NCBI RefSeq assembly: GCF_964204645.1
Contig: NC_134033.1
Span: forward strand, 15,136,655-15,200,654
Reading direction: 5' to 3'
Length of the DNA: 64,000 nt
Origin: Tubulanus polymorphus
Lineage: Eukaryota > Animalia > Nemertea
Part shown: piece by piece, positions 2,572 through 40,470 of the stretch
How positions within the stretch are numbered: the first letter of the stretch is position 1
Layout of the letters: every line of letters starts with the position of its first letter
Program-made: the position numbers and the translations under genes
The notes under the pieces: model-generated
Seen by the model: only the letters and a program-made list of their open reading frames with translations
Told to the model about the DNA's origin: nothing
Databases searched by the model: none

Positions 2572-4323
2572 CTGGAAAAATATGTAACGGAAAGAATTGA
2601 TTTTTTGAAATTTTTGAGAAAAATTTAACCCTTTCATTTTCACACCCTATAACGCCGGCTACTTTATCAACGGCCAGTTGCATAGTCAAATAATTTCTAA
2701 CTCTTAAGATTGGTCTTAAAGTGTTAGATTGGCTATAGAACCAGCATGGTCGTAGACTAGCCTGGAATGAGCAACTGACCCCAGGGTATAGAACTAACAC
2801 GGTCTTAGACCGGTCTTAAAATCAAAGCAATGATTATGGAAACGACCCCTGGTACCACTAGAAAGAGATATCTAAATACGGTAAGGAATTGCTGATATTT
2901 GGGGATTCAAGACAAGTAATAATTGACAAATGGCTATTCATACGTAATCTTTATATCATGAAACCTTCGTGAAAAAAATTATCCAACAAACTTGAACAAC
3001 TGGGGCTGGGGAAGTAAATAGAGTGACTCCGATATTCAGTTCATCCCCGAGATTAGGCAAGAATGAATAGAGGTCTATTATATATAGAGCATTGTAAATC
3101 AGAGATTCTATGACTATTGGATGAATTAGGGAGGTTTACTCCCACCTCCCTGGATGAATAGAGGTTGCCAAACTGCTGCTGCTGCTGCTGCTGGTAGAGA
3201 ATATCGGGAATTGAGGAGAGTATTCTCACTGTGATGTTACATTTTATCCTCTATCCATCTCTATCTCACTAATAACGGCAGAAGCTTTTAAAATGTATTT
3301 CGCTACTTAAAAATATCAACCGTCAAATGATATACGCGGCGAACGAGACAAGAGGGGGGGAGAGAGAGAAAGAGGGAAAGGAGAGGAGAGAGAGGGAGAA
3401 AACATCCCTCGCCATCTCTACCCTCAACAGTAACATTACCCCATCAAGTATTTCATACAGATCCCGCACAGAGATGTAGGTGGCGAAAGAAATAAAAGGA
3501 AAATAGTTGATATCCAAACGCCACACTGGAGAAGCTACCTGGGCTTCCTTTTATTCAAATTTTAATTGTTCTCAGATGTAATTTCACCCAGCATTTTTTT
3601 TTAACAAGGAAAATGAAAAAAAAAAAAAACGAAAGTCTTACATCTCTACCCGCGTGCCTCCCCTTTCACCCCCCCTCCCCACGATAGCTCCTCCCTCTGT
3701 ATCTGATTCTATCCCCTCGTGGACCCCCTAAACAGCATTCGCGTGAATCATGCCGACCACGTACAACTGTATATACATCATACATATGATTAAACACATC
3801 CGAATGTCTACTGACTGCGCAGTATTCAACAGGGCACCAGTCTCACAGGACACCAGTCTCACAGGGCATCAGTCTCACAGGGCACCAGTCTCATTGTTAT
3901 CATACAAGCGCGTGGATATTCAATTAGCGTTAAATGACTAATCACTTGATCATCAGTGAATTCATTACAAATCATTATCACACAAGTATCTAGAACCGCA
4001 TTAGTCGCATTAGTCGCCAGTTAGTTCGTCGTAATTCGGCCTGTACATCAGAAACGGACCGCTAAGAATGGACCGAATCAATGCAGAGTGTTCGCACACG
4101 TTCTAAAATCAGACCACTGGTTCAGCTAAAAACACGACACTGCGATTGACAGACAATTGAAGTTTCTATTGACTCGGAGAAATGGTCCGTTTTGAAACTT
4201 AGAATAAAACTGGACTGGTCTTACGTTCTAAAGTGGAATGGACCGTACTTAGGAGGCGTGAACGCTTGGTCGATTCTAATTTAGAACGTTCTAAATAAAG
4301 CGGTGTATAGAATAATGATATAC

Positions 4324-4451
4324 CTCATTTTTGTTATTGATCGGCTGATTTCCTTGTTCCCATTTCGAAGCCATCTGAATTGTTTCCAACGTTTTCTGTT
4401 GAGTCGATTTATTTTCGTCCAGTAACGTAACTTCATAGAACTCCTGAATAT
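4324..4451 (-). CDS. dlg1: DLG1 exon (D)IQEFYEVTLLDENKSTQQKTLETIQMASKWEQGNQPINNKNE
   Basis: tttacag acceptor, gtatat donor, phase 1-0; DIQEFYEVTLLD is diagnostic of DLG1. Confidence 0.96.
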
Positions 4452-12081: not shown

Positions 12082-12950
12082 CTATTCTACCAATACCCAA
12101 ACTGTTCTCTGATATTCCTATTCTACCAATACCCTCCTAACTGTTCTCTGATATTCCTATTCTGCCAATACCCGAACAGTTCACTGATATTCCTATTCTA
12201 CCAATACCCTCCTAACTGTTCTCTGATATTCCTATTCTGCCAATACCCGAACAGTTCACTGATATTCCTATTCTGCCAATACCCTCCTAACTGTTCTCTG
12301 ATATTCCTATTCTGCCAATACCCGAACAGTTCACTGATATTCCTATTCTACCAATACCCTCCTAACTGTTCTCTGATATTCCTATTCTGCCAATACCCAA
12401 ACAGTTCACTGATATTCCTATTCTACCAATACCCTCCTAACTGTTCTCTGATATTCCTATTCTGCCAATACCCGAACAGTTCACTGATATTCCTATTCTA
12501 CCAATACCCTCCTAACTGTTCTCTGATACTCCTATTCTGCCAATACCCTCCTAACTGTTCTCTGATATTCCTATTCTACCAATACCCTCCTAACTGTTCT
12601 CTGATATTCCTATTCTACCAATACCCTCCTAACTGTTCTCTGATACTCCTATTCTACCAATACCCTCCTAACTGTTCTCTGATATTCCTATTCTACCAAT
12701 ACCCTCCTAACTGTTCTCTGATATTCCTATTCTGCCAATACCCTCCTAACTGTTCTCTGATATTCCTATTCTGCCAATACCCGAACAGTTCACCGATATT
12801 CCTATTCTACCAATACCCAAACTGTTCTCTGATATCCCTCTTCAGCCAATACCCCTGAACTCTGAGAGGCCTATTCTACCAATACCCCTGGTCTCTGAGA
12901 GGCCTTTTCTACCAATACCCGAACTGCTATCAGATATTCTACCAACACAC
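12082..12950. repeat. 39/36-bp two-variant minisatellite
   Basis: ctattctaccaataccctcctaactgttctctgatattc alternating with ctattctgccaatacccgaacagttcactgatattc. Confidence 0.95.
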
Positions 12951-16845: not shown

Positions 16846-19800
16846 CTGCCTATGGATATATGACCTGTATATATGAAATCCAGCAGTGATTTTGTAAAAA
16901 TTTGTTGATGTTTTGTTTTTTTTTCAGATTCATTGGAGTATGCTATAGTAAGTGTATTTATATAATAGGATGGGTGGCAGGATTCAATCCAAGACTTCTA
17001 CTATCGGCGTGCGAACTCGGTTTACTAAAGGTACATATGCCTGTTATATATCTGTGTACATGTCACATTCATTATTGATTATATCACATCCTGACAACTG
17101 TTCAGCTGGCTGGATGCTGATTGTTTGTTTGCTGTGAGATAATCTAAGCTCATCTTGCTTTTGGTATCTTCATGTGTTCTTCAAACTTTTGAAACTTTTC
17201 CCGTTGAATTACAGCCTCCCCTCTCCATCTCCTCTCCCCTATTGAATTCATCAGAATGATTCACGGGCCGACCGTGAAAAGCAGTGAATTTAATAGAAGG
17301 GCAGTGAAATGGGGGTGTTACTACTAGGCCTATGTGCTACTAAAACGAAGACTATGCACTTAAGAGGTGTAAGCTAACTATGCACGACTAAAACGAAGTC
17401 CGATGAGCTATTGCACTCATTAGAAATCATCACTAGGGATGCTATCTGTGTATTCAACCACCTCTGCCAATGAGTGTATGCAATACCAGATATAAACAAA
17501 TGCATCTGAAACATAAATTGGTAGGTTTTCTCTGGTGCATATAGTCTTTTTATTTAGTAGTGCTTTGTTTTAGTTACACTTGTTGCATAACTCAACGAAT
17601 GACGAATTTCAAAATCATATTTATTCTCATACAACAATTATACAAAATGCCAGGTTTGTGCTTGAGGAATTATAACGTAAGCTCCTCAAACACGTGGACT
17701 TTCAAAAACAATTTGTCCAACCACCATAGGCGTATAAACTATAAATGAGTGTTTATACGCCCCTTGGTCCAAACATAGACTCTAAAACAAAAAAGTCTAT
17801 GGCACAACCATGGACTCAATTGTCCATGGCCCCCGCACTAAAACCAGAGATAAACCTGGCCAAATACTCTGGAAAGCGTAGGATTAAGTAATAAATCTGA
17901 TTTACATTCTTTACATCATTTATTTTCACATATCAAATTATTAACTTTTAGCTTATTTTCTCAAATTTTAATAGGAATTTTATTTCTATTAAAAATGTTC
18001 TATGTATGAAATTGTACTAACTTTAAAACCACAAAAGTTACATGTAAGGTATTTATAAGTCTTTATCTACGATACATTTCAACTACAATTTGCATCAATA
18101 GGAAAATAACAAAAGTGCACAAAGAATTGTAAACTTTGATCCATAAAACACCGAAAATTTGACTAGTCTGAAAGTCGTAAGATTATGAATTTGACAATTC
18201 ATGAGGTCAATATAACCGACACTTTGTTATATTTCATGAAATATGAATCTATCATCGTCAACTTTTCAAATGACATCGAGATTGAGGACATCTCAGTTGT
18301 CAAGAAAAAGCTCAACTTTATTCAATAGGACCTTAATAAATCAGTGTTTTATGAACAATTGACATGAACGTGTCATTTGATCCCCACAACAACAATCATA
18401 CCTAAATGACAGGTATCCATATACTTGAGGAAGTGCCTCAGTCATTTACAAAAACATGACCTGTATTTCAAAAAAGTCTCCAACATAAAATACAAAAACC
18501 AGAGATAAAAAAAAATTCAATCTGGAAAGCTTATGATTAACTAAAGAGTCTTTGATTTAATTTTCATAAATATTATTTTACAAGATAACTAAGAGTTTTG
18601 CCACCTTTGCCTTTGTCTTTAAGAGTCCATATATTGCTGGCACAATCAACTAATTCACACTGTTCATATATCCTCATTTATCAAGAGACTGCTCCTCTAT
18701 TTTGCTCCTCTATTTTCCATTAGGGCCTTAATGAAAATAGTATTTTATGAACCATAGGTGAGCACCACAGTAAAAAAGTTGCAATACACTTAACTAAACA
18801 ATTGAACAGTTTTAACATGAATGAAAAACATGTCTGTCGTTTTATTCTTGCACTACAATTATACCCTGGTGGCTTAAGGGTTATTTCAAAACAGTTCAAA
18901 ATAAAAGCATTTAACCTAAAAAATCACTCACTCTGGAAAGCGCAAGGCTAACTAATTAATCTTAATTATTACTAGAAAACTAAAAACAATGCCAAATTTT
19001 CCTCGTCTTTAAGAGATTTCTTCAAACATTATCAACTACTTTTTCCACAAATTTTACATTTGAAACAAAGCAGGGTCTGATGTAAGCACTAGTCCAATTG
19101 CGCGGGACAAATATATTTTCATTAGGGCATGAAGGTTATCATAATCACTCATCCACCGGGCTTGAGTAATTCTATGTCTCAAAGCTTTTATCCCACTCGA
19201 TGCAAGGGATTTTTGTGTCACAATCAGAATATTCATGGAGGACAAGTTGATTTTTGAGGGGGCAGTGATATTACATATGCTTGCCCCAAGGTCAAGTGGC
19301 ATTTATTCCTCAGATCAAACCCTGCAAACTATTATAAAGGTTTTCCTTCGTGATAATTCAAGATAAATCAAGTAAGTATCTTCAAACAAATATGGTTTGA
19401 CTGAGGAAGCTACGGTAACTTCTTAATTGTATTATTCAACTTGATCGTAGATATAAATACAACTCTATATAAAGATCAGAAATTCTTCTTGTCCAGATAT
19501 TACAGGCCCCACACAGACACGGTTAAACCGATAATCAAAACAAAGCTAGGACAATTGACCAATTAGCATTATATCCTAAAGTTATCAAGAAACTGCTACT
19601 ATTTTCGACAGGCCCTTAATTAAATCAGTATTTTATGAACCACTGAAAAGCACCAAAGTGAAATTGTTGCTATAAAACTTAACAACTGAAAAGTTTCAAC
19701 ATGAATGATGAAAATGTACATTGTTTTATTCACGCAACAATAATATCTTAATCGAGGAATCATCCTGCAAGTTCCTAATTTACAAACACGGGAACTGTGT

Positions 19801-21224
19801 TACAATAACAGTCTCCAACATAAAAGCATCAAAACTAGAGATGAGAAACTCAGATTCACTCTGGAACTCTTAGTATCAATTAATCATTACTTTCACTAGA
19901 AAACTAGAATTTTGCCAACTTTGCCTTGTCTTAAAGATTTCCAAACACCTTGACATTACATACTAAGTATTCTGACGTTTTTCCTGGCAGCTTCAACATA
20001 ATTATACAATCGGAAACTAATCAATAACATCATTAACTTAAGTTTATAGCTGTTGTAAATTCTTTCTAAAAAGTAAAATGTATGTACCAGATTTTAGAAC
20101 ATGTATAAAAATGAACAGTCACAGCAGTGATTGAGCGCGGCTAGTTGAAAGGACGGGTCGATCTTTCATCACAGTTATTCAAAGCATTCTATCATATCAG
20201 TTATTTTTTTAAATGTTTTCGATTTAGTTAAGGTTTATGGTTATTTGTTTTGTTCATTACAATAACTGAGTCCGATATAATGCTTTGAATAACAACAGAA
20301 AAGATCTCGGGTTTTCGCTATACTTAGGGAAGGTTGTTCGATAAATGAAGAACCTTATTGATAAATATTTGAAAAAATGCCTTTTCATGTAAATAGAATA
20401 TTAATTTGTTGTTTGTTTGTATTGTTGTTTATTCTATTTATTATTTATTGGTTTTTTTTTATTTTTTAGAATTAATTTATGTACTTGTAGTTTGTAGTTA
20501 TGTATTATTTATACTCCTCTATTTACAACTGCAGGCATTTTTTCACTGTTAAGTTCTGGGCCCATTTTAAGAAAGCGCTACTGATTCACTGCCACTCCTT
20601 AATAATCATTATACACCCGATTTGAAGCTAAGTGATTATTCACGAGAGCCATCTCGTGATATGGATTAACCCATTACAATAAAAGAAGTTCAAACAGCTA
20701 TAAACAATGTTAAAACGTTAAAAATTAGTCCTAACTATAACTTAATGCCTTGTTATTCCTAGTTTTACCTCTCAAATGTAAATAATGGTCTCCTTTCCAA
20801 TAAAGCTTTCGATTTCAAATACGTAGCTGTGATAATCAAACAGATTGATGGAGGCTTAAATCGAAATCTACGATTTGTTTCAAAATTTTCAAATTGGTTA
20901 CCTTCGAAAATATCAATGCCGTCAAATTTGTACATCTACAATTCAGCAAATAGTTAAACACTGGTCTAACGTTATGTTCTATGTTTCCTAACTATGTGAT
21001 ATCTACACGGACAAGCCACAGTTGACTATGTTTAACTATGGTAAGTTGGAAGATTAAACTCACAATTCATGTTGAAACTATATCTCAGTTTAGGAGTTAA
21101 CTCAACAGACCTACGAGTCAAAACTAGGCACTCGACACGACCATTTACCCCTAGTGACTAACTTAACTTGACTTATCTATCGACCAAGTTCTCAAAGACC
21201 AAAATCGTGCATTAATGGAACTTA

Positions 21225-23230
21225 GCTTTTATTAGACTCTCACATTGCATAAACATTATCAAATAGTTTCCTTGAAAACACTATATTATCCATCAGACTG
21301 GTTTGAAAAAGGTGATAAGCAAAAAAATCAATACTTTACTACAGAAGTCCACTATTGTCTTCGCCGCTCCTGGATTTCAGTGTTTATAACATGCACTATT
21401 ATCTATGCTGCTCCTAATAAGATAAACTATTGTCTTTGCTGCTTTTAAAACAGTGTTTATCCTGAATCAGTGTTTATGAGATAATCCATTAGCTTTGTCG
21501 CTTGAATCAGTGTTTATAAGATTCACTATTGTCTCTGCTGCTCCTGATAAAATGTTTTATAGAAATCATTGATTGTAGAAGAATCCATCGTTGAGTGTTT
21601 AATCTGTCGCTGGCTCCTAAACTTCTCATCTGGGCTTCTGCAGTTTTCATCAGCAAATGGGTCAATCAGAAATCGTTGTGGGTGTCTTCTTCAGACCATT
21701 ATTTCCAGGATGTAGTTTGACTGAAACAAAGTGAAGAAAGCAAAACATTTTAGACAGATTTATCATAACTTACATGTCATTTCAAATTACAAGCCACCGT
21801 GTTTTTCACTTAGTTAATATAGTTATTTCCAAAATCAGAATTAGGTTCATTGACGTCAATTGCCGATTTAAACCCCAATAAATAATTGCAGTAGTAGGAT
21901 TAGTTCATCAATGTTTAAGCTTGGAGTAATCATTTGAAAAATTTCTTACTCCAAGGTGTAAGACTAGTAAAGATAAAAGTTCTAAGATCAGCCATGTGGA
22001 CAGGTAAATAGATTTCGATGATAATCACTTATCAAATGATATTCATATGAGGCCTGAAATTTCTTTATACCGGTAATTTCCATCTAATGAGTTTGATTCT
22101 TCTGTGGGTTGTTCAAATCCGTAGATTTCAGATGAGTAGTTGATTTTAAGCTGGTCTCTTTCTTTTAGTTGAAACTTAGCTGCAATGAGTAAAGATATAT
22201 ATCCTGTAATCACGACATTTAGAAATCATCGTAATAACTCCATGTATATCAAGTTACCTTTTATGATTGCTGGTTTCATCATCGACGAGGATCTCCTAAG
22301 TCGGTTGGTTTCTGTGCACTGTTCTCTAATCGGCAGATCTTTGATGAGTTGTTGACCTCAAGCTCTCGTTTGACTTTTCGAGTTGGTGTCCCTTACAAAC
22401 CTACACACCTTCCGGGAGCGAAACGGTGGTTTTTTTCAAAATCGGAAGTCGAAGTACAGATATAGTTGCGTGATCGGCGGTCGTTTTTACAGAGAACATA
22501 ATTGGTAATTCGGTTCCGGTTCATTCAAACAATCTTTTATTCTGCCTAATTCTGATTTTGGAAATAACTATATTACAAGGTTGAAGATAATTTTACAATA
22601 TTTGGTCTTTTTTTTATGTAACTAGTCCGAAAGTTTACAACGTTTAATAATTTTGTCTAACTTCAATTTTTTTGGTTGTTTTCACCGTTTAAATAGTCGA
22701 AGCACATATTGAGTGACTGATTGGGGTTAACTTTTTGTCTGCCTAATTTAATACATCGAGATTTTGGAAATAACTATATTTTACAATATCTGGTCTTGTT
22801 TTCATGTAACTAGTCCGAAAGTTTACAAGGTTGAATAATTTTATCTATTTTTTTTCTGCCTAATTTAATACATCGAGATTTTGGAAATAACTATATTTTA
22901 CAATATTTGGTCTTGTTTTCATGTAACTAGTCCGAAAGTTTACAAGGTTGAATAATTTTATCTATTTTTTTTCTGCCTAATTTGATACATCGAGATTTTG
23001 GAAATAACTATATTTTACAATATTTGGTCTTTTTTTCATGTAACTAGTCCGAAAGTTTACAAGGTGGGAGGATTTTGTCTAACTTTAATTTTTTTGTCGT
23101 TTTCACCGTCTAATTTTTTAGATTTTATAGTAGTTTTTCTCGAGTATGTCTGAAATCGAAGTACATAATTGGGAAATTTGATTCCGGTTCATTCAAACTA
23201 TCTTCCAATCAGTCTGAAACGGCAAGCTGA
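21225..23230 (-). ncRNA. Spliced antisense locus, paralog 1 (acceptors at 23226, 22203/22179, 21720; donors at 22257 and ~22070)
   Basis: Splice sites and exon sequences homologous to 26150-28160 and 28690-29360; AATAAA on the minus strand near 21228; no long ORF. Confidence 0.5.
22540..23110. repeat. ~119-bp tandem repeat, ~4 copies, inside paralog 1
   Basis: gattttggaaataactatattttacaatatttggtctt...catgtaactagtccgaaagtttacaagg; single-copy counterpart at ~29005-29080. Confidence 0.9.
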
Positions 23231-26200
23231 AGAAAAGAGCAGAACCTTTTGAGCAGAAAATCCTTTCGAATATCACTGATCATAATTATCATGTCAATTC
23301 ATATATAAGATCAGCAATGTGGATCGTTATGTAGATTTTGATAAGAGTCTTAAATGATATTTATGAAATTCAACTCATATAATAATTCATCTATATTCTA
23401 AATATCTAAGCAATGGTTGATTATTATAGTTTAACAACAACTCAACTAAAGCATCTATAGTCATCTCTAGGAATACCAGAGTTACAACAAATTTAGTAAT
23501 GCATAATCAATCTTATCAAATTATTTTTGAACTGTTTTCTTTTCTATCTTCTTGAAATTCTTTGTGTCTTTTATTGAAACCCAGGCCCATCATACAGTGC
23601 AAACCTGCTAGTAATATTGGCCTATATATATTTCGATTGTCAGCTAAACCATGTTCGTATTATAAAATTTACTTCATCGTCTGTTAATAAACTTAAGAGA
23701 TGTTTTCTACCCACAGATGGTGACATCTGTACCCAGTGAATGGTATTCTAATCCATTTCATTTATTCTAAATATTGCTCCTAATATATACAATGATCTTG
23801 TAATTATGATAATGTAACTAACTGAAGAGTGAGTGCGCTGCCAGCATTGAGCACACTGATCCTGTAAGTAACATGGTTCTACAGATTTAAGAAACCTTGA
23901 ATCATTCCCACACCTCGACAAATCCAGAATTCTGCAAAGCCTTAAAGATTCAATAAATCCCACACACAAGAGACAGACTTAAAACATACCCAGTATTATT
24001 TATATATCAATCAATATTAAATTATACAGTTGTCTTATCAACCCTTATGGTTTAGATTTGAGCACTTTCACCTTATATGAAGATGCTGAATTAGATACCT
24101 AATCAATTAGTTAATTGATAATGTCCTAGCTATAATTGAAATTGTCTCGGACAATATTTTATATGGGGCTTGAAATTCCTACACGAGAAGAATTTCAGAT
24201 CCGGTACAAATTTGAATTAATCACTATTTGAACTGCTGATTTTGCATCAGAGCTTTTGATACCTAGCTTAACTAACCCAGAATTCCCCAAAACCTAACTG
24301 ATTCAACAGATCCCACACACATGTGGCCCAGTTAGACGCAGATGACATTGCACGATACAGTCGTCTCATCCACTGCGCAATTTTGAATAAGTTTCACTTA
24401 TATTCATTATATTGAATTGATTTTAATTGAATTCTAGGTATCTAAGCGGACCATTAATTAATAATCATACTAGCTATATTTTAGTTGTCAGTTGAACAAT
24501 ATTCATATGGAGCCTGAAAATCTACATGAGTAGAATTTCAGATGTGGTGAATTCGTCACTATTTGAATTCATCAGAAGTTAAAGATAAAAAAGCATATTT
24601 TTAGTGGTAGATTAAAAACTCCCTTAGCCGAATGGCTATATAATCTTTTTTTCCCTGATATAGTACACTGTGTATAAGGACCGAAAGACCTTGTTATGAC
24701 CTGACCTCCCTGGTGCGGTGCGAGTCATGATGCTAGAAAATAGTTCGAAGGAGAGGGGTTAGTAAAAGAGAGCTATTAGCATGAGGAATAAGACCTAAGT
24801 TTAGGATATCCTGTCAGAATAAGGCTTTCAATCTGACATACACAGTGAAATTGAAATATTCCCCCTTCCAAATCCAGGAATGTATTTGTGCACAGATTTG
24901 TTTTATCTCCCTTCGATCGGAAGTAAATCTGCGTGAAATGATTTTGGCAATATGTATCAAAACTAATACAGCTGTATGAAGACACAATAGGTTCACTAAG
25001 ATACAGATAAACAAATGTGCTCAGATACACATGTATCAGCTACATTTTAAATTTCCATGGAATTAGAGATAATTTCACATAACAATTGAATTAACCTTAA
25101 TCGATCTAAGTAATACGTTAATGAGTAATTCATCTTAGATTCTAATTGTCAGTTAAACTATATCTAATATGCGTCACTTGACACACAGTATGGCTTGTAG
25201 ATATTAATTGAATCAGTTAGGTTAGAGTAAATTTTGGCAATATTGAAAAGCATGACTAGTCGTTATATGCGCGGCAGTTGGCGATACAAAACTGATCAGT
25301 CAATGAGACTGATTCATTTATAGATGTGCTCAAATATATTATATATTTCAGCTATATTTCAATAAATATTTATGATATAAAAAGTTTTGATCTAACATCA
25401 AATATTGAATTCATCTTAATTGTGAATATCTAAGCCATTTTTCCTGGCTGTATTTATGCTAATTGTCAGTCAAACAACAATTATCATGCGTCGCCCAAAA
25501 CAAGACGCAGTGTTTCAGGAATGAATTAAATCAATTAAAGCTTTGGTTTATTCTGGATTTGTCAAAATGTTGAGACCAAATCACTGTTTCATAAAGACCT
25601 GTAGTCCATAGTTTTCCCCATATAACACCAGACCTCGATAATGCCTTAGACACTATCTTATGAAATTCATTACTGTTATGTGTGAGGCAGCACATAGTAT
25701 ATACTGTAAAATATGGCCTCAATCTTTATAAATTTATCAATATATTATTTGTAAAGAAAAATCTATTAACCAACGATAAAGTTTAATTGATATATGTTTA
25801 AGTAAAGCCGACCTAAATTTAAATGGGGCCTTGAAATATCTACACCAGAAGAATTTCTCATCAAACATTACAAGACATTGAATGATTGCTTATATCTAAG
25901 CGATTGGTTAATTAGTAAATTGTTCTATCTATATCTTGATTGTTAGTTAAAAAATAGTCATATGAGGCCTGAAATGTCTACAGTACATTCGAAAAATTTC
26001 AAATGTCACATAAGATATTGAATTTACCTTAATTGTACGTACTTACAAAATCTTTTAATCAATAACTGACCAATCTACATTTTAATTATCAGACAAAAGA
26101 ATATTTAAGTGTCTTCACTCAATCATTTCGTCTAATATTGTTAATATTCAAGCAATCATTGCCTAGCTATATTTAAATTTACTACCGGCCACAGAGCTTC

Positions 26201-27201
26201 AATAAAGTAGTGCAGAGATTGCTGGCTCCTCAACTTCTCATTTGGGCTTCTGCAGTTTTCAACAACAAATGGGTCGATCAGTATTCATCTACTTGTGAGT
26301 GTCGTCTTCAGGCCAATTTTTCCGAGATGTAGTTTGGCTGAAACAAAGTGAAAAAAGCAAAACATTTCAGACAGATTTATCATAATTTATGTGTCATTTC
26401 AAATTACAAGCCACCCTGTTTTTCACAAAGAAAATTCATTGACGTCAATTGCTGATTCAAACCCCAATAATTAATTGCAGTAGAAGGACTAGTTCATCAT
26501 TGTTTAAGACTAGTGAAGATAAGTTCAGCCATGTGGATTGGTAAATAGATTTTGATGATAGTCAATTATTAAATGATATTCATATGAGTACTGAAATTTC
26601 TTTATACAGGTAATTTCATGTATATCAACTTACCTTTAAAGATTGATGGGTTCAGTTCTGGCCTTTTCTGTGCACCGTTCCAGTTTGTAGATTTTGGACG
26701 AGTGTTTGATCTCAAGATGGGCTTTTTCTTATAGTTGAAATTCAGCTGCAACGATTAAAAGAAGATATCCTGTAATGAAAAAATATTTCATTTAGAATTT
26801 ATCAAAATAATTTCATGTATATCAAGTTACCTTTAATGATTGCTTGGTTCGTAATCGGTGTTGATCATCTTAAGTTTGTTTGTTGATAAGTTGGATTCTA
26901 GTTGGCCTCATCTTACATTTCAAGTTTGCTGGGTTCAGTATCGGTTAGAACAATTGGTTGATGCATTTGATTCAAGCTTGGATTGTTCAGTGGCCAGAGC
27001 TTATCTGTAGATATTTGATGAGTCGTTGATTTAAAGCTGGGCAGTTTCATATAGATATGATTTAGCTGAAATGAGCAAACAAAGATATCCTGTAATGACA
27101 AAATATTTCATTTAGAATTTATCGACATAATTCCACATATATCAAGTTACCTTTTATGATTGCTGGTTTCATAATCGGCGATTATCTTATTAATTGGTTA
27201 G

Positions 27202-27279
27202 TTAGTTGGCCTCATCCGTGCACTGTTCCAGTTGGTCGATTTTGGAAGAGTAGTTGATCTCAAACTGGGTTTTTCTCAT
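27202..27279 (-). CDS. Candidate small ORF MRKTQFEINYSSKIDQLEQCTDEAN
   Basis: Same peptide as 27646-27723 despite four nucleotide differences, all synonymous. Confidence 0.3.
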   Translation of the reverse strand: MRKTQFEINYSSKIDQLEQCTDEAN

Positions 27280-27645
27280 AGTTGAAATTTAGCTGCAATG
27301 ATTAAAAGAAGATATCCTGTAATGAAACAATATTTCATTTAGAATTTATCGAAATAATTCCATGTATATCAAGTTACCTTTTATGATTGCTTGGTAATCG
27401 GCGATTATCCTATTAGTTGGTTAGTTAGTTGACCTCATCTGTTCACTGTTCCAGTTGGTCGATTTTGGACGAGTAGTTGATCTCAAACTGGGTTTTTCTC
27501 ATAGTTGAAATTTAGCTGCAATGATTAAAAGAAGATATCCTGTAATGAAAAAATATTTCATTTAGAATTTATCGAAATAATTCCATGTATATCAAGTTAC
27601 CTTTTATGATTTTGGTTATCGGCGATTATCCTATTAGTTGGTTAG

Positions 27646-27723
27646 TTAGTTGGCCTCATCTGTGCACTGTTCAAGCTGGTCGATTTTGGACGAGTAGTTG
27701 ATCTCAAACTGGGTTTTTCTCAT
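27646..27723 (-). CDS. Candidate small ORF MRKTQFEINYSSKIDQLEQCTDEAN
   Basis: Differs from its neighbours mainly at synonymous sites (TCG, CAG, CTT). Confidence 0.3.
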   Translation of the reverse strand: MRKTQFEINYSSKIDQLEQCTDEAN

Positions 27724-27855
27724 AGTTGAAATTTAGCTGCAATGATTAAAAGAAGATATCCTGTAATGACAAAGTATTTCATTTAGAATTTATCGAAATA
27801 ATTTCATGTATATCAAGTTACCTGTAATGATTGCTTGGTTCGTAATCGGCGTGGA

Positions 27856-27966
27856 TCATCTTAAGTTTGTTTGTTGATAAGTTGGATTCTGGTTGGCCTC
27901 ATCTGTGCACTGTTCCAGTTGGTCGATTTTGGATGAGTAGTTGATCTCAAACTTGGTTTTTCTCAT
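27856..27966 (-). CDS. Candidate small ORF MRKTKFEINYSSKIDQLEQCTDEANQNPTYQQTNLR
   Basis: ATG to TGA contained within one repeat exon; paralogous sORFs in three neighbouring exons. Confidence 0.3.
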   Translation of the reverse strand: MRKTKFEINYSSKIDQLEQCTDEANQNPTYQQTNLR

Positions 27967-29398
27967 AGTTGAAATTTAGCTGCAATGATTAAAAGAAGAT
28001 ATCCTGTAATGACAAAATATTTCATTTAGAATTTATCATAATAATTTCCATAAATAATATACCTAGAATAGCCTACTCAGTTATATTCGTAACACCGAAC
28101 AAATTATAAGCGAACATACGATACCTAGTCGAATGAAATGCTCGCCATTTTGTTTTGGGTTCTACATTGGGTTTTCCCAATGGGCTTTCCCAATTACATC
28201 AGATGTTCCCGGAGTTTCCCCTTTATCCAACAAACAGCCAATCACATTCAATGTAGCTCAGGTAATGAGGTCAACTCAGATAAATAGAAGCGAGAAAATT
28301 TTGGGGGTTTATAAAGTGAGGACCTGTAGGTCGAAAAGTACATCGGGATGAGTCGCAAAAAAATAGCAACACTTCCAGGAAGGATTGAACTTTTATATAT
28401 TTCAATTCCAAGTATGCAAATTCTCATATATGAAAACGTGCCATTACTTAGTGCTAAAAAGCAGGTTTTTACGTGTTTTTCAAGAATAAGTCCCCTACTA
28501 TAACTCGATCACTATGAAATTTTTGTGGGCTCGAGAACTCATTAAGCCAAACCATGACACCAAAATCAACACTATTGGTTCAACAGCCAATGTTTACGCC
28601 TTGCTGACACACCGGTACTCTATTCATTTTCAATGAAAACTGCTTCTCCAGACCATTTGCATAGGCAAACATACAGTTCGCCAAAAATCAACTTACATTT
28701 CAAGTTTGCTCGGTTCAGTATCAGTTAAAATGTTCTAAGTTCGTATCAAATATCAAATTACCTTTTATGATGGCTGGGTTCATTATCGGAGGATCTCCTA
28801 AGTTGGTTGGTTGAGTTTCATCCAAATTGGCCCCTTCTGTGCACTGTTCTCTAATCGGCAGATCTTAGTTGATGAGCTCTCGTTCGACTTTTTGAGTTGG
28901 TGTCCCTTACAATCGTGAGACACCTGCCAGGAGCGAAACAGGCGGGAATCGAAGTACAGATATAGTTGTGTGATCGTCGGTCGATTTTACATAATTTTTT
29001 TTCGATAATTTTACAATATTTGGTCTTTTTTTTCATGTAGTCCGAAAGTTTACAAGGTTGAAGATAATTTTGTCTAATTTTTTTTTTGAAATCGGAGTAC
29101 AGATATAGTTGTGTGATCGTCTGTCGATTTTACATCATTTTTTTCGGAATCAAAGTACTTCTTTGTCTTCTTGGGTTTCGTCGAAGCTGAAATTGAGAAA
29201 AAGAAAAACATTTTGTAGTCACACATTTCTTCATCATTAATAATCATCCTAATTTACGTGGGTATCAACTTAACTTTCAAGATTGCCGAGTTCAGTATTT
29301 TTTTCGGCATCTTCTGTAGTCGCCTTCTAGCATCTTCTTCTTCAACTTCTTGGGAGTCCTGAAATGAAAAAAAGAGAAGAGCGATGAAAACCTGGTAC

Positions 29399-29584
29399 GG
29401 AACAAAACTAATGTTCGAAAGCTTTTCAGCTCTCCGTCGCCGGTCACATGCCGAGAACACCAGACAATGAGCCAGCCAGGAATATACTGCCCTCTACACG
29501 CCCTCACACAGAACGCGAAAACCAGAATGACAACGCCTCACATTCCCCATCTAACTGCAGGATGTACTGGGTGATGTCAGTAAC
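29399..29584 (+). mobile_element. RTE-like non-LTR retrotransposon 3' fragment, left arm of inverted repeat
   Basis: Translates (with frameshift) to QLSVAGHMPRTPDNEPAR...ALYTPSHRTRKPE*QRLTF...LQDVLGD, like the post-RT C-terminus of RTE-clade LINEs (RxRQLxFxGHxxRM...YALYxPxHGxRxPGRQR). Confidence 0.7.
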
Positions 29585-29654
29585 TGACACACCTGTAAAA
29601 TTGCACGAAACACAAATAGCGCAGTACAACCAGCTTGACCGGGTTGAGATTCAG

Positions 29655-30165
29655 GATCTCAACTAGCACTCAAAAGCGTGACAAGAGACTTCATCCACTG
29701 ACCGAGGTTGTCACAAGGACACAATGAAACTAGCACTCACAAGCCGACAAGAGACTTCATCCACTGACCGAGGTTGTCACAAGGACACAATGAAAACTAG
29801 CAATCAAACTAGAAATCAAAGAGCGTGACAGTAGAATCATCCCTCAGCCGACTCAGAATACCAGAAACAAAGAGCGTGACAGTAGAATCATCCCTCATCC
29901 GGGCGTGACAAGAGACTTCATCCACTGACCGAGGTTGTCACAAGGACACAATGAAACTAGCACTCACAAGCCGACAAGAGACTTCATCCACTGACCGAGG
30001 TTGTCACAAGGACACAATGAAAACTAGCAATCAAACTAGAAATCAAAGAGCGTGACAGTAGAATCATCCCTCAGCCTACTCAGAATACCAGAAACAAAGA
30101 GCGTGACAGTAGAATCATCCCTCATCCGGGCGGTCACAAGGACACAATGAATGCTAGTAGCGTGA
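29655..30165. repeat. Complex tandem duplications forming the spacer of the inverted repeat
   Basis: Repeated blocks gacaagagacttcatccactgaccgaggttgtcacaaggacacaatgaaa (x4) and aaagagcgtgacagtagaatcatccctca (x4). Confidence 0.9.
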
Positions 30166-30184
30166 CAATCCAGTATAACCGCTC

Positions 30185-30402
30185 CATTTGTATCCCGCGC
30201 AATCCCACAGATATGCCCGTCATTGACATCACTCAGCACACTTTGTAGATAGGTGGGGGAAGTGAGGCCTCGTCATCCTGGTTTTCGTGTTCCGTATGAG
30301 GGCGTGTAGAGGGCAGCCATTTCCTGACCGACGCTTTGTCTGACATCCTCGACACGTGACCGGCGAAGGAGAGCTGACGCTTTCGGACATTAGTTTTGTT
30401 CC
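30185..30402 (-). mobile_element. RTE-like non-LTR retrotransposon 3' fragment, right arm of inverted repeat
   Basis: VRKRQLSFAGHVSRMSD...ALYTPSYGTRKPG*RGLT...YLQSVLSD...IARD; reverse complement of 29399-29584 at roughly 80% identity. Confidence 0.7.
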
Positions 30403-33400
30403 AGCAAACGTTGAAATTCGACAGAGAAATCGGCCCTGAAAAATAAAACGAGTTAAATGCTGAAAAATAGAACGGATTAATAAACACGGAACAGTACAGG
30501 ACAGCACGGAGACGAACAGTAACACATAAAACATAAAGACGTCGTTCCTCAGGAAGCAGGAACAGGAGCAAGAGCGGGAGCGCAGCGAAAATCGCCAGGA
30601 GGAGAATCCACGGTAGCATGTTCACAGTGTGAGTGTGCAGAGGTGAATGGCATACGCTTGTGTACACCGTGGTCAGCCGGTGACGTATTCAATAGCGCGT
30701 ATGAATGATATCAACAACTCAGCAATTGTGTCTCTATTGTTGAATGGATTTACATTGAGAGCTTATAGAAGTTGAATGAAAAGGTTCTACTGCCGGGTTG
30801 AATACACGCCAGTAGCCAGCTGAACAATATTGTAGAACTTTAATAAGGCCATGAAAATAAATTTCTTTGATTCCCAACAGCTCCCCTCCTAATTTAGCCG
30901 CTGCCTGTTTTTTTTTCTTAAATTTTAGAATAATTTATTGAAATCGAAGAATAAAAACATTAAGATTTATTGATGAAAACCTCTAGCTTTATTTCTCATA
31001 AATGCATAGATACCCCAAAGTGGTGACATAAATAATTCCAACTTCAAGGCTTAACAAAAATGATACTTTGTTTCTTCAGTTCATTTCTATAGCGGCCGGG
31101 TCTGTTATGGTAAAATAGATCACGATTCTAAAAAACAGTAATGTCCAAGGTAGATAGGCGGCCGGGTCCAGTTTTAAGCTCAGCAGAGCTGAGAAAAAAT
31201 TTTGTTGAAGTTTTGTTGAAGTGAATAAATTGTCTAACAAACTTCATACACAGTGTACGATCGATCGGTAGTTCACATGATGTAAGTGGAATGTATTTAT
31301 GATTAATCATCATTTCATGCTGTTATCACAGAGATCCCGTACCTGTAGGGCCGTATTCAGGGGGGGGGGGAGGGCGCGAAAGCTCCTACCCCCAAAAGTT
31401 CAAGTTCCGCTTCATATTTTCCATGCGTTATGTGTTGTTTATGTCTTACAATTTATGTGGTTGGTATCCTGTTTTTTTGTCAACAATTTTAAATCTTAAA
31501 TGTTATTCCAATCTGTATAGGCCTCATCAGTAGTATGCACATGGGTCAAAGATCATGATGGCACGATGGACCCATTGCATAGAATGATTCTATGCAATGT
31601 TTCATCATGGGATTCCTCAAATATAAATTATTTGAAAAAATAAACGTTACATTAGTCGCGGATTTTCTACATGAGTCGATCTTAGGTTTTTTAATTGCAT
31701 AGATAAGTTTTCTGTGGTTTGGAAGCATTAATGATTACATTGCTATGAGATGATGATCAACAAATCAAATTTTCAGATTATGAAAAATTATTTAGATTCT
31801 GCCGTACATGGAAAATGTCAGAAAAGAAAGATAGCCAGAAAGCCCTCAGAATACACCTTAGAGTGCCTTAAATAAATGAAAAAAATTTTACCTACCCATA
31901 GACGGGGCTGCATACGGCCCAGCCGTAAGATTTTCATAAAAACTCCCTGATTCAATTCAGGGGAGAAATATTAGGATTTTTTTAATCACTCAGAATACGG
32001 ATCCTCTGAAATTCTGCCAAAAACTTCATGCCTACCACTCATGATTTGAAAAAAAAAAAAATTTTTTTCTTTAATTTTGATTCTAGATTAAACGGTCAAG
32101 TCCATATTAAGAATTTCGTTTCTTGTTCTTCTCTGTTTTTAGGTTGTCGAGTGTTTAATAGAATTAGGGGTTGATTGTAATCAAGGCGAAGGTCAGGGTA
32201 CTCCGATCTGCTACGCCTGTCGACATTAGAACGAGGCTATGGTACAGTGTCTGCTTCAACAGGTATATATCGATATATCGAGTGACTCCAGTGAGAGAGC
32301 CAGCCACTCCAGTTTATATCTACTGAAATCCATAAATCACATCTGGCTGAGCTCATTTTCATCTTAAGAACAGTTTTAGATAAGAACATGCTATGAGTGT
32401 CCCTAAGACCAATCGAAGAAGCATCTTGTATCTAGATCTTGACTGGAATTAACCCTACACTGATTTATAGCTAGAAATTATCAAATTTAAATGTTAACTT
32501 TCTTTGAGGTCCGACTGTGAAGTGGTTGTATATATTTTCAGGGTATCAATGATGTGCAAACTCCGCTGAAATTAAGTTTAGATTTAGAAGCTCATAATAT
32601 TACAGGCATGCTGCTTCGTCATATGGGATTTGATAAAGAAGGTTAGTACTGAACAAATCATCTAGTTTCATGGTTGTGAGTTAGTTTCAAACTTGATTCG
32701 AAACTATGAAACCGTATCTTTGAATATTGTGTTCAAGATAAGAATGTTTTGTAGGTGAAGATGTGTTGTTTATTTTGTAGCTGGAATTGTATCGTGGAGT
32801 GGTTTAAACCTCGGGAATATTCAACCAGAATGGTTGATAGCTACGCTATTAGACTCCCCTGATAGGGTATCTAAACCTACTGGTGAGTGTCTAACCAGCA
32901 GAACTCGGTTCCCCTATTCTTAGAGTAAGAATCAATTCATTTTCAATTGGTTTATTGCGCAGTTCAATTCAAACTCAAAAATCGTGGAACTGCCTCCAGG
33001 ACCTGGTCAGAAAGACCAGTCTGTGGTTGAGTTTTACGATTGGATGTTTCCACAAACCTTAATTAAAGCTTACAAACAATAATAAGATTACCCTACTAAC
33101 TTATCAGGAACCAGATCACAAAAAGTATCAAGATGCCTCACAATGGGATAGATACAAGTTTTATAAGATTTCCGATTTATTTTCGCGCTGTAAAATTTCC
33201 GATTCATTAACACAAAATTTAAAGAAAATCCTATATTTTTGCAGAAGACGACCAACTGAAACCATTAATGCAACAAACGAGAGCTGGACAACAAGCGCGA
33301 AGCTGTCTGAGTTTATCAGTTGAGAGTCAGGTTTTAATGGGTAGTCGACTGGCGCTCAGATACCCCGTAGATATCGGTAAGTCAGCAATCTAACTCTTCT

Positions 33401-33758
33401 CGTGTAGTCTTGCTTCCTAATTGTGGGTTATTCTTTTCAGTAGATTGTTAGTTATTTGATTTTTGTTTAGATTTACGAGAAAATGAAGACATATCTAAAC
33501 AGTTGACGACTTGTCCCGATACGGTTTACCGACAAAACGTCGAACGGCGATCATTTCTGTCGAAGTTACGTTTAAAATGACAATCTTCGCCGGACTTCTG
33601 CAAAATCAACCCGTTTGATTTCAACAGTGCTCAACCGAATTCTCCGTTACTACAGAAACGATATTCCGAAAACGATATATTCAAAGATTATCGACGTAAG
33701 TAGTTAGAGAGTTTTGAGATATATCTAAATCCTATCTTAAAGGAGCGATAAGTAACAG

Positions 33759-33919
33759 GGCTGGGTTTCATAGATGTGGAAGAAAAATAGTCCCTGGCAA
33801 CATTTTGAAATTTGTCAGTTATTACCATGGTTTCTCATTGTAACCATGGTGGTTTTGTCACCCAGATTGAGGATTTACCCCTAGGGATAACTTTGATACT
33901 CAGTCTATGAAACCAGGCC
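33759..33919. mobile_element. PIF/Harbinger-like MITE in an LRRK2 intron; related decayed or tandem copies at 57110-57490
   Basis: TIR ggctgggtttcataga / tctatgaaaccaggcc; TSD cag. Confidence 0.75.
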
Positions 33920-35469
33920 CAGGTTTCCCAATACTCAGAAACAGAGATATCAGTGCGGGATTATTCATTATAACTGACTAGTTTTGAAAGTCTTCTGTCT
34001 GTAACCGGTAGATGAGTAACAGATATTTCCTTGTATTTGTTCATGTATTTTGGTAATTGTTTTTAAACGCAGCAACTCGTAAACAGTTTGTATTTGTCGA
34101 CTGGCCACAAGAGATTGAAACATGGAAACAGCAGACAGTTAGTGGAGCGAATACTCCGTTCAGTAGTAAAGATCCCAGACGTAACCTAGCAGCTGTCGGA
34201 GATAAAGTCATTCCTGTCGGTAAGAAACAAACATCTCAATCCAGTTCTACAGCTCGACTTGAGAATTTAGAATTGAATGTTTGAAACCCGAGTGTGAAAC
34301 TGATCTCTGGAATCAGTTCCACAAAATTGTTTAATTTGTCTAATTTTAAAGTTAATTCAGCTTTCATTATTTTAACACTAAGGTCAAATTTCAACCTCAA
34401 ACAGTCGGACTGTCTCACTCACTAATACAACCATTGAACTGAATGTCAACGGGTTTTTATTTTGTGAATATTTCATGTATGAATTTGTGTTTTAGAATCG
34501 AGCTGGCTGCAGAAATCACCGACTCCGTTCTCTCGTAATAAACGTAAATCATTGTCACGACGACCAGCGATTTATGAGATTTCAAATCATTATGGCAGCA
34601 CGGACAGTCTGATTGATGTATGTTTTACAGTTTCCAAAAATCTAGCCAACTTAATTTTGGTCCAGTTGAGACTTCAAATGAGACTAGGAAAATCTCATTT
34701 CGGTCCAGTCCATACTTGAGACTAAACAGAAGACTGGGATAAACTAACTTTTGTCTACAGAGACACAAAAAGTCCAGTCTCAGTCCAGGCTTAATTTTCA
34801 CTGTACCTCCTCGATACCTCCCCTAGCACAGCTTAAGTTTTATTTGAATTCAGATATAAAGATTTTAGGGATATTTTCAACAAGTTCTGCTTAGTTCCCA
34901 TTTCTTTGACATTCAAATTAGATGTTATCCCTCCTGAAGATCTCGAGAATTGTATTTATGAAATGAGATGTGCTATTCTAAGTTGACCAGTACACCAGGT
35001 AAAATTCAAACATCCTCTGGAGATTTGGTCTGGAAATATGCATCAGAAATGTGTTCATGTGTAGAGATGTATTTAGTGAATTGATGTTTTAATACAGTGT
35101 TGTAAAATGACTATATTTAGTATCTGAATAAAGTTTACGATTGTTGAACTCCTTAGTGCTTTGTCAGATCAGATATTTGGATCCACCTCAGCCTACTGAT
35201 TTCCTGATACAGACAGCAAGTTGGGACAGTCAAATTAAGAGAATTGGTCAAGACAAGTTACTCAGATCACACTGGAAATTCGCAATATCCTCTCTCCTCA
35301 TGGACCACACAATGTCAATGTTGACTTTGCTAGAAATCGATTATAAAATTTATCACAACCAATTCTTTTTCACTGAATTCAATATTTATTGTTCACTTCT
35401 GGTACAAAATCTTGTTCAGCCCCTGACAAGAGAATAAGCAATGACACTACGTATTTCACGACATAGAAC

Positions 35470-36515
35470 AGTAATTTATTTTTTCATCGACAAATTGGGA
35501 CGATCCTGATATCCCTGATTTGAATGTTAGTGTCTTAAGAATCATAAAGACCATGTCTCGACCAGACAGATAATCCAATCACAATTCGAATTGAAGGTTC
35601 GCTAGTGCAGTTATTCACAGAATCCAGCTTTTTAAACCTCATCAGTTTATCAGATCGTGAGCACTGGAGAAATAAAGTACACAACATCTTGGTGCAGCGG
35701 CGCTTGCTGATGTAACTGATGATGATGAGTTTATCAGAATCAAGGAGTTTCACCGCCTGTTATTTGGAATCTCATTTCATTACAGCTAGTGCCGATTCTT
35801 TATTCCCTTTGATTACTGCATGATGTTATCATTCTGAAATTAAAATACATATCACACAATTAAACCTGGATTGACTTCACAATTAATGGTTCGGAATCCA
35901 TTTTTCAAACTTACCTTGATGCATTGCAATCTATTCTTTTCATGTTGAGCTAATTTGTTACTCATTACTTCAACTTCTTAAAACATCCTACGAGTTGCGA
36001 CTCACAAAGTCATCACTAAAACGCTCAGAAAAATCTACAATAGATAATCAATATAGTGTTTGTGAAATAGCACTCATATTCAATTTTCACATTTTTAAGA
36101 AAGTAAGTAGGTGAAGTTACCTTTTTGATGTCATTATTTTCACTGGATCAACTGCTGATATCCAATGTCACATTAAGAACAATCAATCAATCACCTCCAG
36201 TGAACAAACAAGTAGCCTCTGCTGCATGGTTCAGTATGTCAGTAAGTGGTATAGTAGTATTGTTAGTTTCCATCCATCCATCCAGTCCAAAAGGACCAAA
36301 TTGCCGATTGATGACCGGTAGGTTTTGACGGCCCGGTCACGCAGCCATCCTGAATTGAATACCGATATTTTCGGTACCACACGCTAAACAAGTGCCTGCA
36401 GGTGCGTTACCTGGCAGTTTTAATGGAATTTCTTTCTTCATTGATATAAAAAAATGACTTTAAAGAGGTCCATGGAACGTAAATCGAGACACTGTGTAGG
36501 CGGCCATGTTACATT
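35470..36515 (-). ncRNA. Four-exon spliced non-coding (or decayed) gene; exons ~36515-36411, 36349-36121, 36034-35915, 35833-~35470
   Basis: Three gt..ag introns of 61, 86 and 81 nt; AATAAA at 35475-35480 (minus); YY1 (aacatggccgcc), E-box cacgtg, CCAAT and ETS-like motifs at 36499-36570; stops interrupt the frames checked. Confidence 0.55.
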
Positions 36516-38322
36516 GTTCACGTGATGGAAAACTGAAATCTGATTGGATCCGTAAATTCCGCGGAAGGTGGCGGACGGGCAAAACCTGTCCCATATTGAC
36601 CGCCAACCAGTCTAGGGCAGAAAACTTCTTTTCTGTTCTTTTGCTTACTGAAATATTCAAATCTTATATAGAATTTTCTCTATCTCTGTGCATAATTTTT
36701 GTATTCCTCAAAATAAATTTAGCATCAGATTGGAATTTCTGTAATAGCGGCAGTAAACAGTTTCGTTCACTGGGTGTATTCTGATAGCTAATCTGTTAAT
36801 CACGCTGGTTGCGCTAACTGCTCGTAATGTTTTATACAAATAAAGAAAATCAATTTTACTCGTGCCACATTTTCTATATGAGTTAGAATGATATTTCTGA
36901 AGTAAATCATTATTTTTTCTTAGGTATAATTTAATGAATGTGACAACAGTGAAGGCCTTGAATGGTCTCACCGAATGTTTCCGTACGGAGTTTCACGGGG
37001 CGGTAAGCAGAAGCTTTTTTTGTAAAATCACTTTTATTTCATCGAAGTCGACATTGTCAGTTCATTGAGAGTAGTAATATAGTTAAGCAGTGAATTGAGT
37101 TTATTAGTTTTGGTTTCGATATTTGCGTTAAATTCTATTTTGGAGGTAATAATAGGGCAGAATCATCCTCCCGTATGAACGCCTTCTACCGTCTATACGA
37201 CGTCACGCGTAGCCGCGTATGACATTAAACTTGTCACGCAAAGGATAGTCTAATTAGAGGCAGTGACGTCACACGAATTGTCCACAGGTGTCTGGACATT
37301 AAACTGTAGTTGACCTTCTCAATAATCTGCTTGTACTAGATGTCCATTAGGACACAGTGCTATCAGAACACACGATGCCTCTTTTTTGTACGAAACCAGT
37401 GATTAATGAGATTAACCATTTACGCCTTTCATTAAGTTTGGTCTTTTAAGTTTATTTCCATAACGTTGGACTAAAACTTCCATCAGTTATAAATCTGTAA
37501 TTCATATTGAATTTACAACGACCGCTCTTTTTGATTCTTCCAATTCTTTTATATCATCATCAACACTTCGTAATCACAAGGATCCCAAACTTCGCCTGAG
37601 ACATTTTCATTGGAAAATAAACCATAAACGCCAACATGGTTTAGTTTGAAATGTGTGACTTGAATTGATTAGAAATGTTTATTATATTTGAGTAACATTT
37701 CGCCTTATGACTTTTAGCCATCATCAGGCGTACTTGATGAATTTTTTTTCAGAGTTTTTATGTACGCCAATTTTTATAAGGCATTCATCGACAAGTTGAT
37801 GCTAACAATACACGGAAGAAGAAGAATTGTTGTCCTCATTGAAAACATTAAGTAATCAATAGCAATAAAATGCACCAAAAACTCGATTCGACTTTTTCTA
37901 GAAACTGGATCAAAATAAGCAATGTTATCAGAAAACTATCAAAAACTGGTTATCCAAACTTCACGCAGCAATTGTGAATGAACAGTGGTGATTCTAGACT
38001 ACAGATTGCCTGTACGGGATATAATAATAGTTGAATGATGAATAATAAATGGCTACATTGATAGCAAGGACGGATCCAGGATTTTCTTAGTGGGGCTCTG
38101 CTGGTCATCAGCCGAAGAAAATCTTGAAATTAGTTTAATTGTCCATGAGCGTTTTAAGGCACTGCTAAATCATCTTATATATTCAAAATGTATCTTGTAT
38201 TCTGAAATATAGCGTTGAAACATTGAAAATGAATAATACAAAGGATATTTTCCTTAGGGGGTTACAGCACCCAAAGCACCCTTGGATCTGTGATGGATAC
38301 TATATTTCAGGTAAACTGTTAA

Positions 38323-39235: not shown

Positions 39236-40470
39236 TCAACTGCGTTTGAAACAATAACCTATTTTATTCACGATCAAAGTCATCGCCGTTCGTCTAAATC
39301 GATCGTGCACCAAACAATAAATGAAAAAATTCGCCGACGAGTCCGAAATCGGGAACAACTCGGCGAAAAACCTCTGCGCGTTTTTCGTCGCTCCGTAGTG
39401 TCGTATTTTCGGTAAATCGACGAAAAGTCCGAGAAATTTTTGATAACTTTGAAACGAACTCGGAAATTCGAAAACCAGAAAAATAACCGAAACGGCGACT
39501 GTCAAACGAACGGCTTTCACCGAATCTACAAATTCGGAATTCGACATCAATTTTTTTCGATTTCGCGAAATTTGGCGAACTTTTCCGACGATGTAGATAT
39601 TTAAAACGATGAGAATCGTGAACGGTAAAACTTCTTTAATCGCCGGACTCAAATAGATGGAAGTCACGGATTTCCATCGGTCCCATACGTTAAACGTATG
39701 CAGTAGACCTCTAACGGGTCGACCGGTGCAGACGTCGTATCCGGTGACGTCCGTATAATGAGCGAGACCGTAAACATGCGGCAGATAAACGCACGACGTT
39801 ATCACCGACGTTACGATATTCGCGTATAAAATTCGTAGTTTCGTGATTTTGGTGCGCGCGTAAAACGGGAACGCGAGCGATAAGAATCTCTCTACGCTGA
39901 TTAAAACGGTCAGCCAGTTACGCGACACGTGCGTCGCGTAGCGTAGAAAATCGATCGACAAATATATATCCGGTCGTAAGTAGATGATCTCTTCCGGGTA
40001 GTCACGGTAACGCGGATATAGACGGACCTTCTGCCGGAAGACGAAGTCGCCCTCGATGACCCAGCCGACCCAGTAACGCAGCGGTTCGCGTATACCGCGA
40101 CTTATCAAAAATGCGATATCTGTGTACGCTAGATATATGAGCAGTTGAATAGACACGGAAATTAACGGTTGATTTCGTAAAATAATTATGTTGAAAATGT
40201 TCAACACGATTCCGATTAAAGTTATGGAGGTTCCGCCGGCGAGTTTAACGACAGCCATGAACAGTCCATCGGTGCTGTACGAACAGTCGACCGGTATCTG
40301 CGACGTCAGAGTGGAATTGACTGAATCCGTCTGCTTCGAGAAATCCGTCTGTAGCTGCGTGGAATCGGTCTGCTGTAGGGATTCCGTTGTGATATTCGTC
40401 TGGCGTGTAAATTCTGTCCGCTCTGTGATACCTCTTTCACGAACAAGCTCATAATTGCCATCAATCTTAT
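39236..40470 (-). CDS. Class A (rhodopsin-like) GPCR, FMRFamide-receptor-like / srw-type invertebrate group; main coding exon
   Basis: Seven hydrophobic segments; LAxxD (LAYTD), SRNWLTVLISVERF, FEFP and SANFFIY motifs. The frame stays open 76 codons upstream of ATG 40258 (S/T-rich, NIT and NST sequons); probable acceptor at 40471-40473. Confidence 0.92.

Follow-up and report, generated by a model that had tools for sequence, protein, structure and literature searches.

The hairpin at positions 29399–30402 of the window (the whole 64,000-nucleotide stretch of Tubulanus polymorphus DNA analysed here) is probably one copy of an internal fold-back module of a large, non-coding, mosaic dispersed repeat rather than a single-copy host gene, and the strand asymmetry of its stem was probably fixed in the progenitor of the repeat family. 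The original prediction had read this stretch as a domesticated, individually conserved hairpin gene, a claim that found no support, because the same hairpin, with the same arm differences and set in the same flanking repeat, recurs on contigs C1–C11 at some 140 loci, as estimated by extrapolation.

Gapped alignment of the two arms of the hairpin (Table 1) gave 220 aligned positions at 80% identity, with 44 mismatches and three small indels. An inverted-repeat stem had been predicted here and does exist, with arms of ~225 bp instead of 185 bp and a spacer of 552 bp instead of 630 bp, as the stem extends ~40 bp closer to the loop than first delimited. The tandem repeats noticed in the spacer were confirmed as two 227-bp units in exact register (29676–29902 and 29903–30129), each of which is built from 66-bp sub-repeats. 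One such unit is found in 27 of the 30 copies of the hairpin that we fetched from the genome, and two are found in the window copy, in its paralogue L049 and in L003. The stretch is a long imperfect inverted repeat that is able to fold back on one strand, as is expected of an hpRNA.

Table 1. Features of the hairpin and of the repeat around it (positions in the window)
Feature	Position	Remark
Patchy homology (80–94%, with gaps) to L043, the longest copy of the commoner form	17588–30938	
Stretch common to the window and paralogue L049	24492–36614	L049 lies at ~12.54 Mb of C9, on the same contig, 2.6 Mb away
2964-bp block replacing ~218 bp of the commoner form	26220–29183	also in L049 and L050
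Hairpin-bearing block	29184–30938	two flank types diverge at 30938
Left arm	29399–29625	decayed coding sense on the plus strand, loopward
Spacer, asymmetric, A+C-rich on the plus strand	29626–30177	two 227-bp units
Right arm	30178–30402	decayed coding sense on the minus strand, loopward

Each arm-to-arm transition was classed by the strand on which a G:U pair results. An earlier hand count for the outer ~135 bp of the stem, with 14 transitions of the minus-strand kind and 2 of the plus-strand kind, was exactly reproduced, and over the whole stem the 36 transitions split into 27 that pair as G:U on the minus strand and 9 that do so on the plus strand, alongside 8 transversions. The minus-strand G:U bias of the stem is significant (binomial test, p = 0.0039). 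In plus-strand terms the excess consists of G>A and/or T>C in both arms, and in minus-strand terms of C>T and/or A>G. CpG decay was rejected as its source on principle, because any strand-symmetric process, of which CpG decay is one, treats the two arms alike, so that a 1:1 ratio is expected. The bias is patchy along the stem, running at 14:2 in the outer part, 3:7 in the middle 51 bp (29534–29584) and 10:0 in the innermost 41 bp (Fisher test for heterogeneity, p = 4e-4); the loop-proximal ~50 bp, said earlier to lack the bias, do lack it at 29534–29584, while the innermost 41 bp, where it is complete, had been overlooked. No general strand skew was found in the 20 kb around the hairpin, where only the element itself, which is richer in G+C, is skewed.

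Folding of both strands bore out the expectation that the minus strand would form by far the more stable structure, with −521.3 kcal/mol for the full 1004 nt against −378.2 kcal/mol for the plus strand. With the arms only, the minus strand gave −341.1 kcal/mol and 29 G:U pairs, and the plus strand −273.2 kcal/mol and 10 G:U pairs. When the 36 transition sites were swapped between the arms at random, the energy gap was −14 ± 20 kcal/mol (120 replicates), and the observed gap of −68 kcal/mol was reached by none of the 120.

Both arms translate into the same decayed peptide, with the coding sense pointing to the loop, and they have an in-frame TGA and a frame change in common. The proposal that one dead copy had undergone inverted duplication was thereby upheld, since the common TGA and frame change indicate that the arms derive from one coding fragment that was already dead. 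An origin of this fragment from the C-terminus of an RTE-clade LINE is putative: a LINE-like C-terminal motif is visible by eye, and no database search confirmed a match to RTE. The search for homologous proteins yielded no candidate in support of a LINE or RTE origin of the arms, Pfam returned nothing, and the Atlas scores were all below 0.9. Four tandem-repeat proteins from the representative library, with many matched stretches, were taken as artefacts, the best of them giving no BLASTP alignment. We also sought another arm-like fragment by which the differences between the arms could be polarised, and found none, whether in the window or among the fetched loci (~260 kb). Pattern searches of the genome for a parent LINE or other outgroup returned only left-type arms, right-type arms and two intermediates.

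Searches of the genome from which the window comes (268 Mb in 77 contigs) showed the hairpin to be dispersed. The left arm returned at least 315 first-look candidates, and all 40 of the 40 matches scored were 98–100% identical over 242 nt and spread over eleven contigs. A 20-mer common to both arms had 218 exact matches (113 forward and 105 reverse), compared with 0 for the control. The first 100 of these 218 places comprised 35 convergent pairs, mostly ~583 bp apart, and 30 singles, and at least three of the single matches (L013, L014 and L019) proved to be complete hairpins in which the partner 20-mer is mutated. Extrapolation from the 20-mer places would put the total at roughly 140 hairpin loci. 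With a 34-mer containing three degenerate sites, the arms sorted essentially into a left-type and a right-type haplotype, plus two intermediates; as essentially only the two main haplotypes occur, all copies share identical arm differences. All arm matches scored or listed fall within the repeat family itself. Many near-identical copies on different chromosomes with different flanks are what characterises a dispersed repeat, and the hairpin of the window has them; an hpRNA gene would instead be a discrete host locus, single- or low-copy and maintained for its own sake, which this hairpin is not.

Among the matches listed, hairpin copies occur only in the outer portions of contigs, giving an arms-versus-centre pattern. 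The centres free of copies among these matches are 8.5–23.4 Mb of C1 (of 32.1 Mb) and 10.6–24.7 Mb of C3 (of 27.8 Mb), and on C5 (24.9 Mb) no copy was listed at 6.3–20.8 Mb.

The repeated unit extends well beyond the hairpin. Both arms, the spacer and at least 29185–30570 are kept at ~90–99% identity in 30 of 30 fetched copies, which amounts to at least 214 bp to the left of the arms and at least 168 bp to the right, and about half of the copies reach 30938; these copies were picked by left-arm similarity, and estimates of diversity among them are biased accordingly. Beyond the hairpin-bearing block at least two types of flank can be told apart among the copies, and the flanks are themselves repeated. 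The 2964-bp block that adjoins it on the left contains a tandem array at ~27000–28050, which is also present in L049 and L050. Between the window and L049 identity is 98.0% over 9.2 kb (24492–33703) and then 92.7% to 36614, and homology exceeds 10 kb in some copies. No ORF of at least 130 aa was found in 17588–30938 save a frame running through the right arm, and the longer ORFs that the fetched loci contain are those of neighbouring genes or of an unrelated reverse transcriptase. No match to an Rfam family was found in the window.

Unlike in foldback elements or MITEs, where inverted repeats form the ends of the unit, the arms here are internal. The junctions of the repeat at 29184, 30938 and 17588 are mosaic, and a short palindrome precedes one possible end, at 36614. 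The homology between the window and L049 stops just after this palindrome (36560–36614 in the window and ~12240–12295 in the stitched L049 sequence), and the L049 palindrome has a perfect 10-bp stem followed by ~11 nt ending in CTA. The end at 36614 could be the terminus of a mobile element and faintly resembles a Helitron 3' end, with the expected flanking T absent in the window copy. Since no clean termini, target-site duplications or coding capacity were found in the repeat, either in the window or in the fetched loci, segmental duplication remains an alternative to transposition as the means of spread. The stitched sequence of L048 contains the left part of the repeat twice, at 468–1396 and 3464–4392, 2996 bp apart (corresponding to 17588–18159 plus 18976–19340 of the window), so a portion of the large repeat can be tandemly duplicated.

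Two stretches of the window, 17031–36600 and 27202–27966, consist wholly or largely of genome-recurrent sequence, and readings of them as unique non-coding genes or peptide arrays need a copy-number check. Just beyond the repeat zone lies an ordinary gene, an intronless ORF of 340 aa at 39236–40258 on the minus strand, with matches to seven-transmembrane receptors of the rhodopsin type (E = 3e-14) and the Srw type (E = 3e-10).

The energy difference between the strands is a property of the whole family, as the minus-strand stem is 58–86 kcal/mol more stable in 30 of 30 copies, and since every copy carries identical arm differences, the bias is older than the amplification. Neither strand is favoured by substitutions among the copies (C>T 87, G>A 88, A>G 59, T>C 69), and changes from Watson–Crick to G:U pairs number 24 on the minus strand versus 16 on the plus strand, a difference that is not significant. 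Conservation of the structure, which had also been proposed, is not supported, given this lack of strand bias and of any significant preference for minus-strand pairing, and the pattern fits genomic copies, that of the window included, that change as neutral DNA. Of the C>T and G>A changes among copies in the arms, about half lie at CpG, and the observed/expected ratio of CpG is 0.75 in the repeat zone (17588–36614) versus 0.98 in the rest of the window. Together these two observations suggest that the repeat is methylated in the germline, in a genome otherwise lacking CpG depletion.

The history that best accounts for these data begins with the inverted duplication of one dead coding fragment, which produced the two arms. 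The arms then diverged by ~20%, transitions giving minus-strand G:U pairs being in threefold excess, and the unit spread to its ~140 extrapolated loci only after this divergence, as every copy carries the same arm differences. The changes that followed the spread are neutral-like and free of strand bias, in the window copy as elsewhere, and the asymmetry itself was probably fixed in the progenitor of the family. Its cause may have been that the module was repeatedly present as minus-strand RNA, so that C>U and A>G changes that preserve pairing were tolerated or favoured, or alternatively that a strand-specific process of the deaminase type acted on the module. If a copy were transcribed from the minus strand, through read-through for instance, its RNA would be predicted to fold into a double-stranded stem of ~200 bp, which Dicer could cut into small RNAs directed at the repeat; this would be a property of the whole family and not of the present locus. 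Two features sit uneasily with this history. The middle 51 bp of the stem lean the opposite way, and the plus-type transitions (9) look neutral when set against the transversions (8), a ratio as compatible with an excess of minus-type changes as with selection. No outgroup was recovered by which to polarise the 36 transitions, and selection and mutational bias are both candidate causes.

It is somewhat unlikely, though to be taken seriously, that mutation by itself produced the asymmetry, as a strand-specific footprint left in the progenitor with no role for a hairpin RNA. Candidate processes would be G>A hypermutation of plus-sense retroelement cDNA, A>I editing of minus-strand RNA before its reverse transcription, and transcription-associated asymmetry. 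A process of this kind is suggested by the numbers themselves, because 9 plus-type transitions to 8 transversions matches the ~1:1 ratio seen among the copies and it is the 27 minus-type transitions that look in excess. The differences are moreover clustered and patchy, with runs of three and of two adjacent A/G differences in the inner stem, the heterogeneity of the bias along the stem is significant, and the spacer, which is unpaired, is skewed in the same direction, with A over T and C over G on the plus strand. Other observations argue against a purely mutational footprint. Compared by eye with the usual LINE C-terminal motif, a weak standard, the left arm seems to show both G>A and T>C, so that no single type of deaminase fits. 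ADAR disfavours G as the 5' neighbour, and in 13 of the 27 minus-strand G:U pairs (hand count) the base 5' of the G is a G, which makes pure ADAR hyper-editing unlikely. Changes among the copies also lack the asymmetry, so the process is not a property of genomic sites.

Evidence bearing on expression came from four of seven sequence runs (six of undeclared kind and one guessed to be RNA), all in the form of assembled contigs that show neither strand nor small RNAs, which were compared with 27500–33000. Runs X1 and X2 behaved as genomic DNA, with even depth on unique sequence and very high depth on repeats, and coverage by run X4 was confined to the repeated parts of this interval. Run X7, the putative RNA run, covered only 32 nt (32098–32129) and nothing on 27500–32097, which is not evidence of silence. 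Candidate minus-strand splice acceptors, as had been predicted, are present as acceptor-like strings near 30436 and 29593.

A functional role at the level of the family, in which the module is kept for what its minus-strand RNA does in the repeat or in the host, appears improbable. The hairpin would then be retained in source copies as a built-in trigger of small RNAs that silence or regulate the family, or as a structure needed for its propagation, and the G:U replacements would serve to break the DNA palindrome while keeping the RNA duplex. The G:U bias and the energy gap between minus and plus strands are what such a role would leave behind. Precedents exist in maize Sirevirus LTRs, whose internal palindromes attract small RNAs (PMC4728375), and in engineered G:U hairpins, which retain RNA pairing while the DNA palindrome is broken (PMC9263138). 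A possible sign of constraint comes from comparing the two flank types by their majority sequences: across the hairpin and spacer just 2 of 724 positions differ, compared with 24 of 203 and 11 of 170 in the outer flanks, in a sample chosen by left-arm identity. The near-identity of the core between flank types points to either recent exchange between subfamilies or constraint on the core. A greater conservation of the hairpin than of its flanks, seen when copies were pooled, was set aside because it largely vanishes on the left side within flank types, where the hairpin is not clearly less diverse than the left flank, and because selecting the sample by left-arm identity biases it. The absence of a significant preference for minus-strand pairing among the copies speaks against a functional hairpin.

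A locus-specific, domesticated hpRNA gene of the Drosophila type, spliced from the minus strand and conserved in structure, is very improbable: the hairpin, the G:U bias and the acceptor-like strings are all present and the window copy has the rarer two-unit spacer, but there are ~140 such loci by extrapolation, the two-unit form occurs also in the ~98–99% identical paralogue at ~12.54 Mb of C9 and in L003, and every arm difference is inherited from the family, so that nothing distinguishes the window copy.

The probable reading as a family-borne module can be placed among known sources of hairpin RNA. The hpRNA loci of Drosophila occur once or in few copies in the host genome and have defined gene targets, demonstrated transcripts and Dicer-2-dependent 21-nt reads. 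They yield endo-siRNAs (see also PMC10317233 and PMC10292708). The present stretch resembles them in being a long imperfect fold-back of a few hundred bp that arose by inverted duplication and has G:U pairs and one readable strand. Unlike them, it is a module present at ~140 repeat loci (by extrapolation), with no target beyond its own family among the matches scored or listed. The stretch could work as a hairpin-RNA precursor but fails the hallmark of an hpRNA gene, which is a discrete host locus. In maize Mu killer and the inverted retrotransposon pairs of mouse oocytes, one rearranged locus acts on a family that is dispersed. As is proposed for the present case, inverted duplication of a mobile-element fragment gives rise there to a hairpin RNA homologous to the element, whereas here the hairpin itself is the dispersed unit.

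The closest kin, judged by analogy, would be hairpin-forming regions that all members of a repeat family share, among them the palindromes in the LTRs of maize Sireviruses. These palindromes are family-wide and conserved and have been proposed as the source of silencing hairpin small RNAs (Bousios et al. 2016, PMC4728375). In both cases the hairpin-forming region is carried by all members of the family, although the Sireviruses are plant LTR retrotransposons of known class with short palindromes and small-RNA mapping, whereas the present stem is ~225 bp long and belongs to an animal repeat. A further parallel is found in engineered G:U hairpin transgenes, in which C-to-T changes in one arm break the DNA palindrome and the RNA still pairs (Zhong et al. 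2022, PMC9263138). On the minus strand of the present stem, 29 of the 203 pairs (~14%) are G:U, inside the range tested in that study; the transgenes are man-made and were tested in plants, whereas the present pattern is natural and any such benefit to it would be conjectural.

Recognition of the stretch as a probable repeat copy removes a false lead, namely that it was the first hairpin-RNA gene of this kind of animal. At the same time, a family with a G:U signature on one strand lets one ask whether repeat-borne hairpins feed RNA interference in this animal, and whether selection at the RNA level or deaminase editing shapes such repeats.
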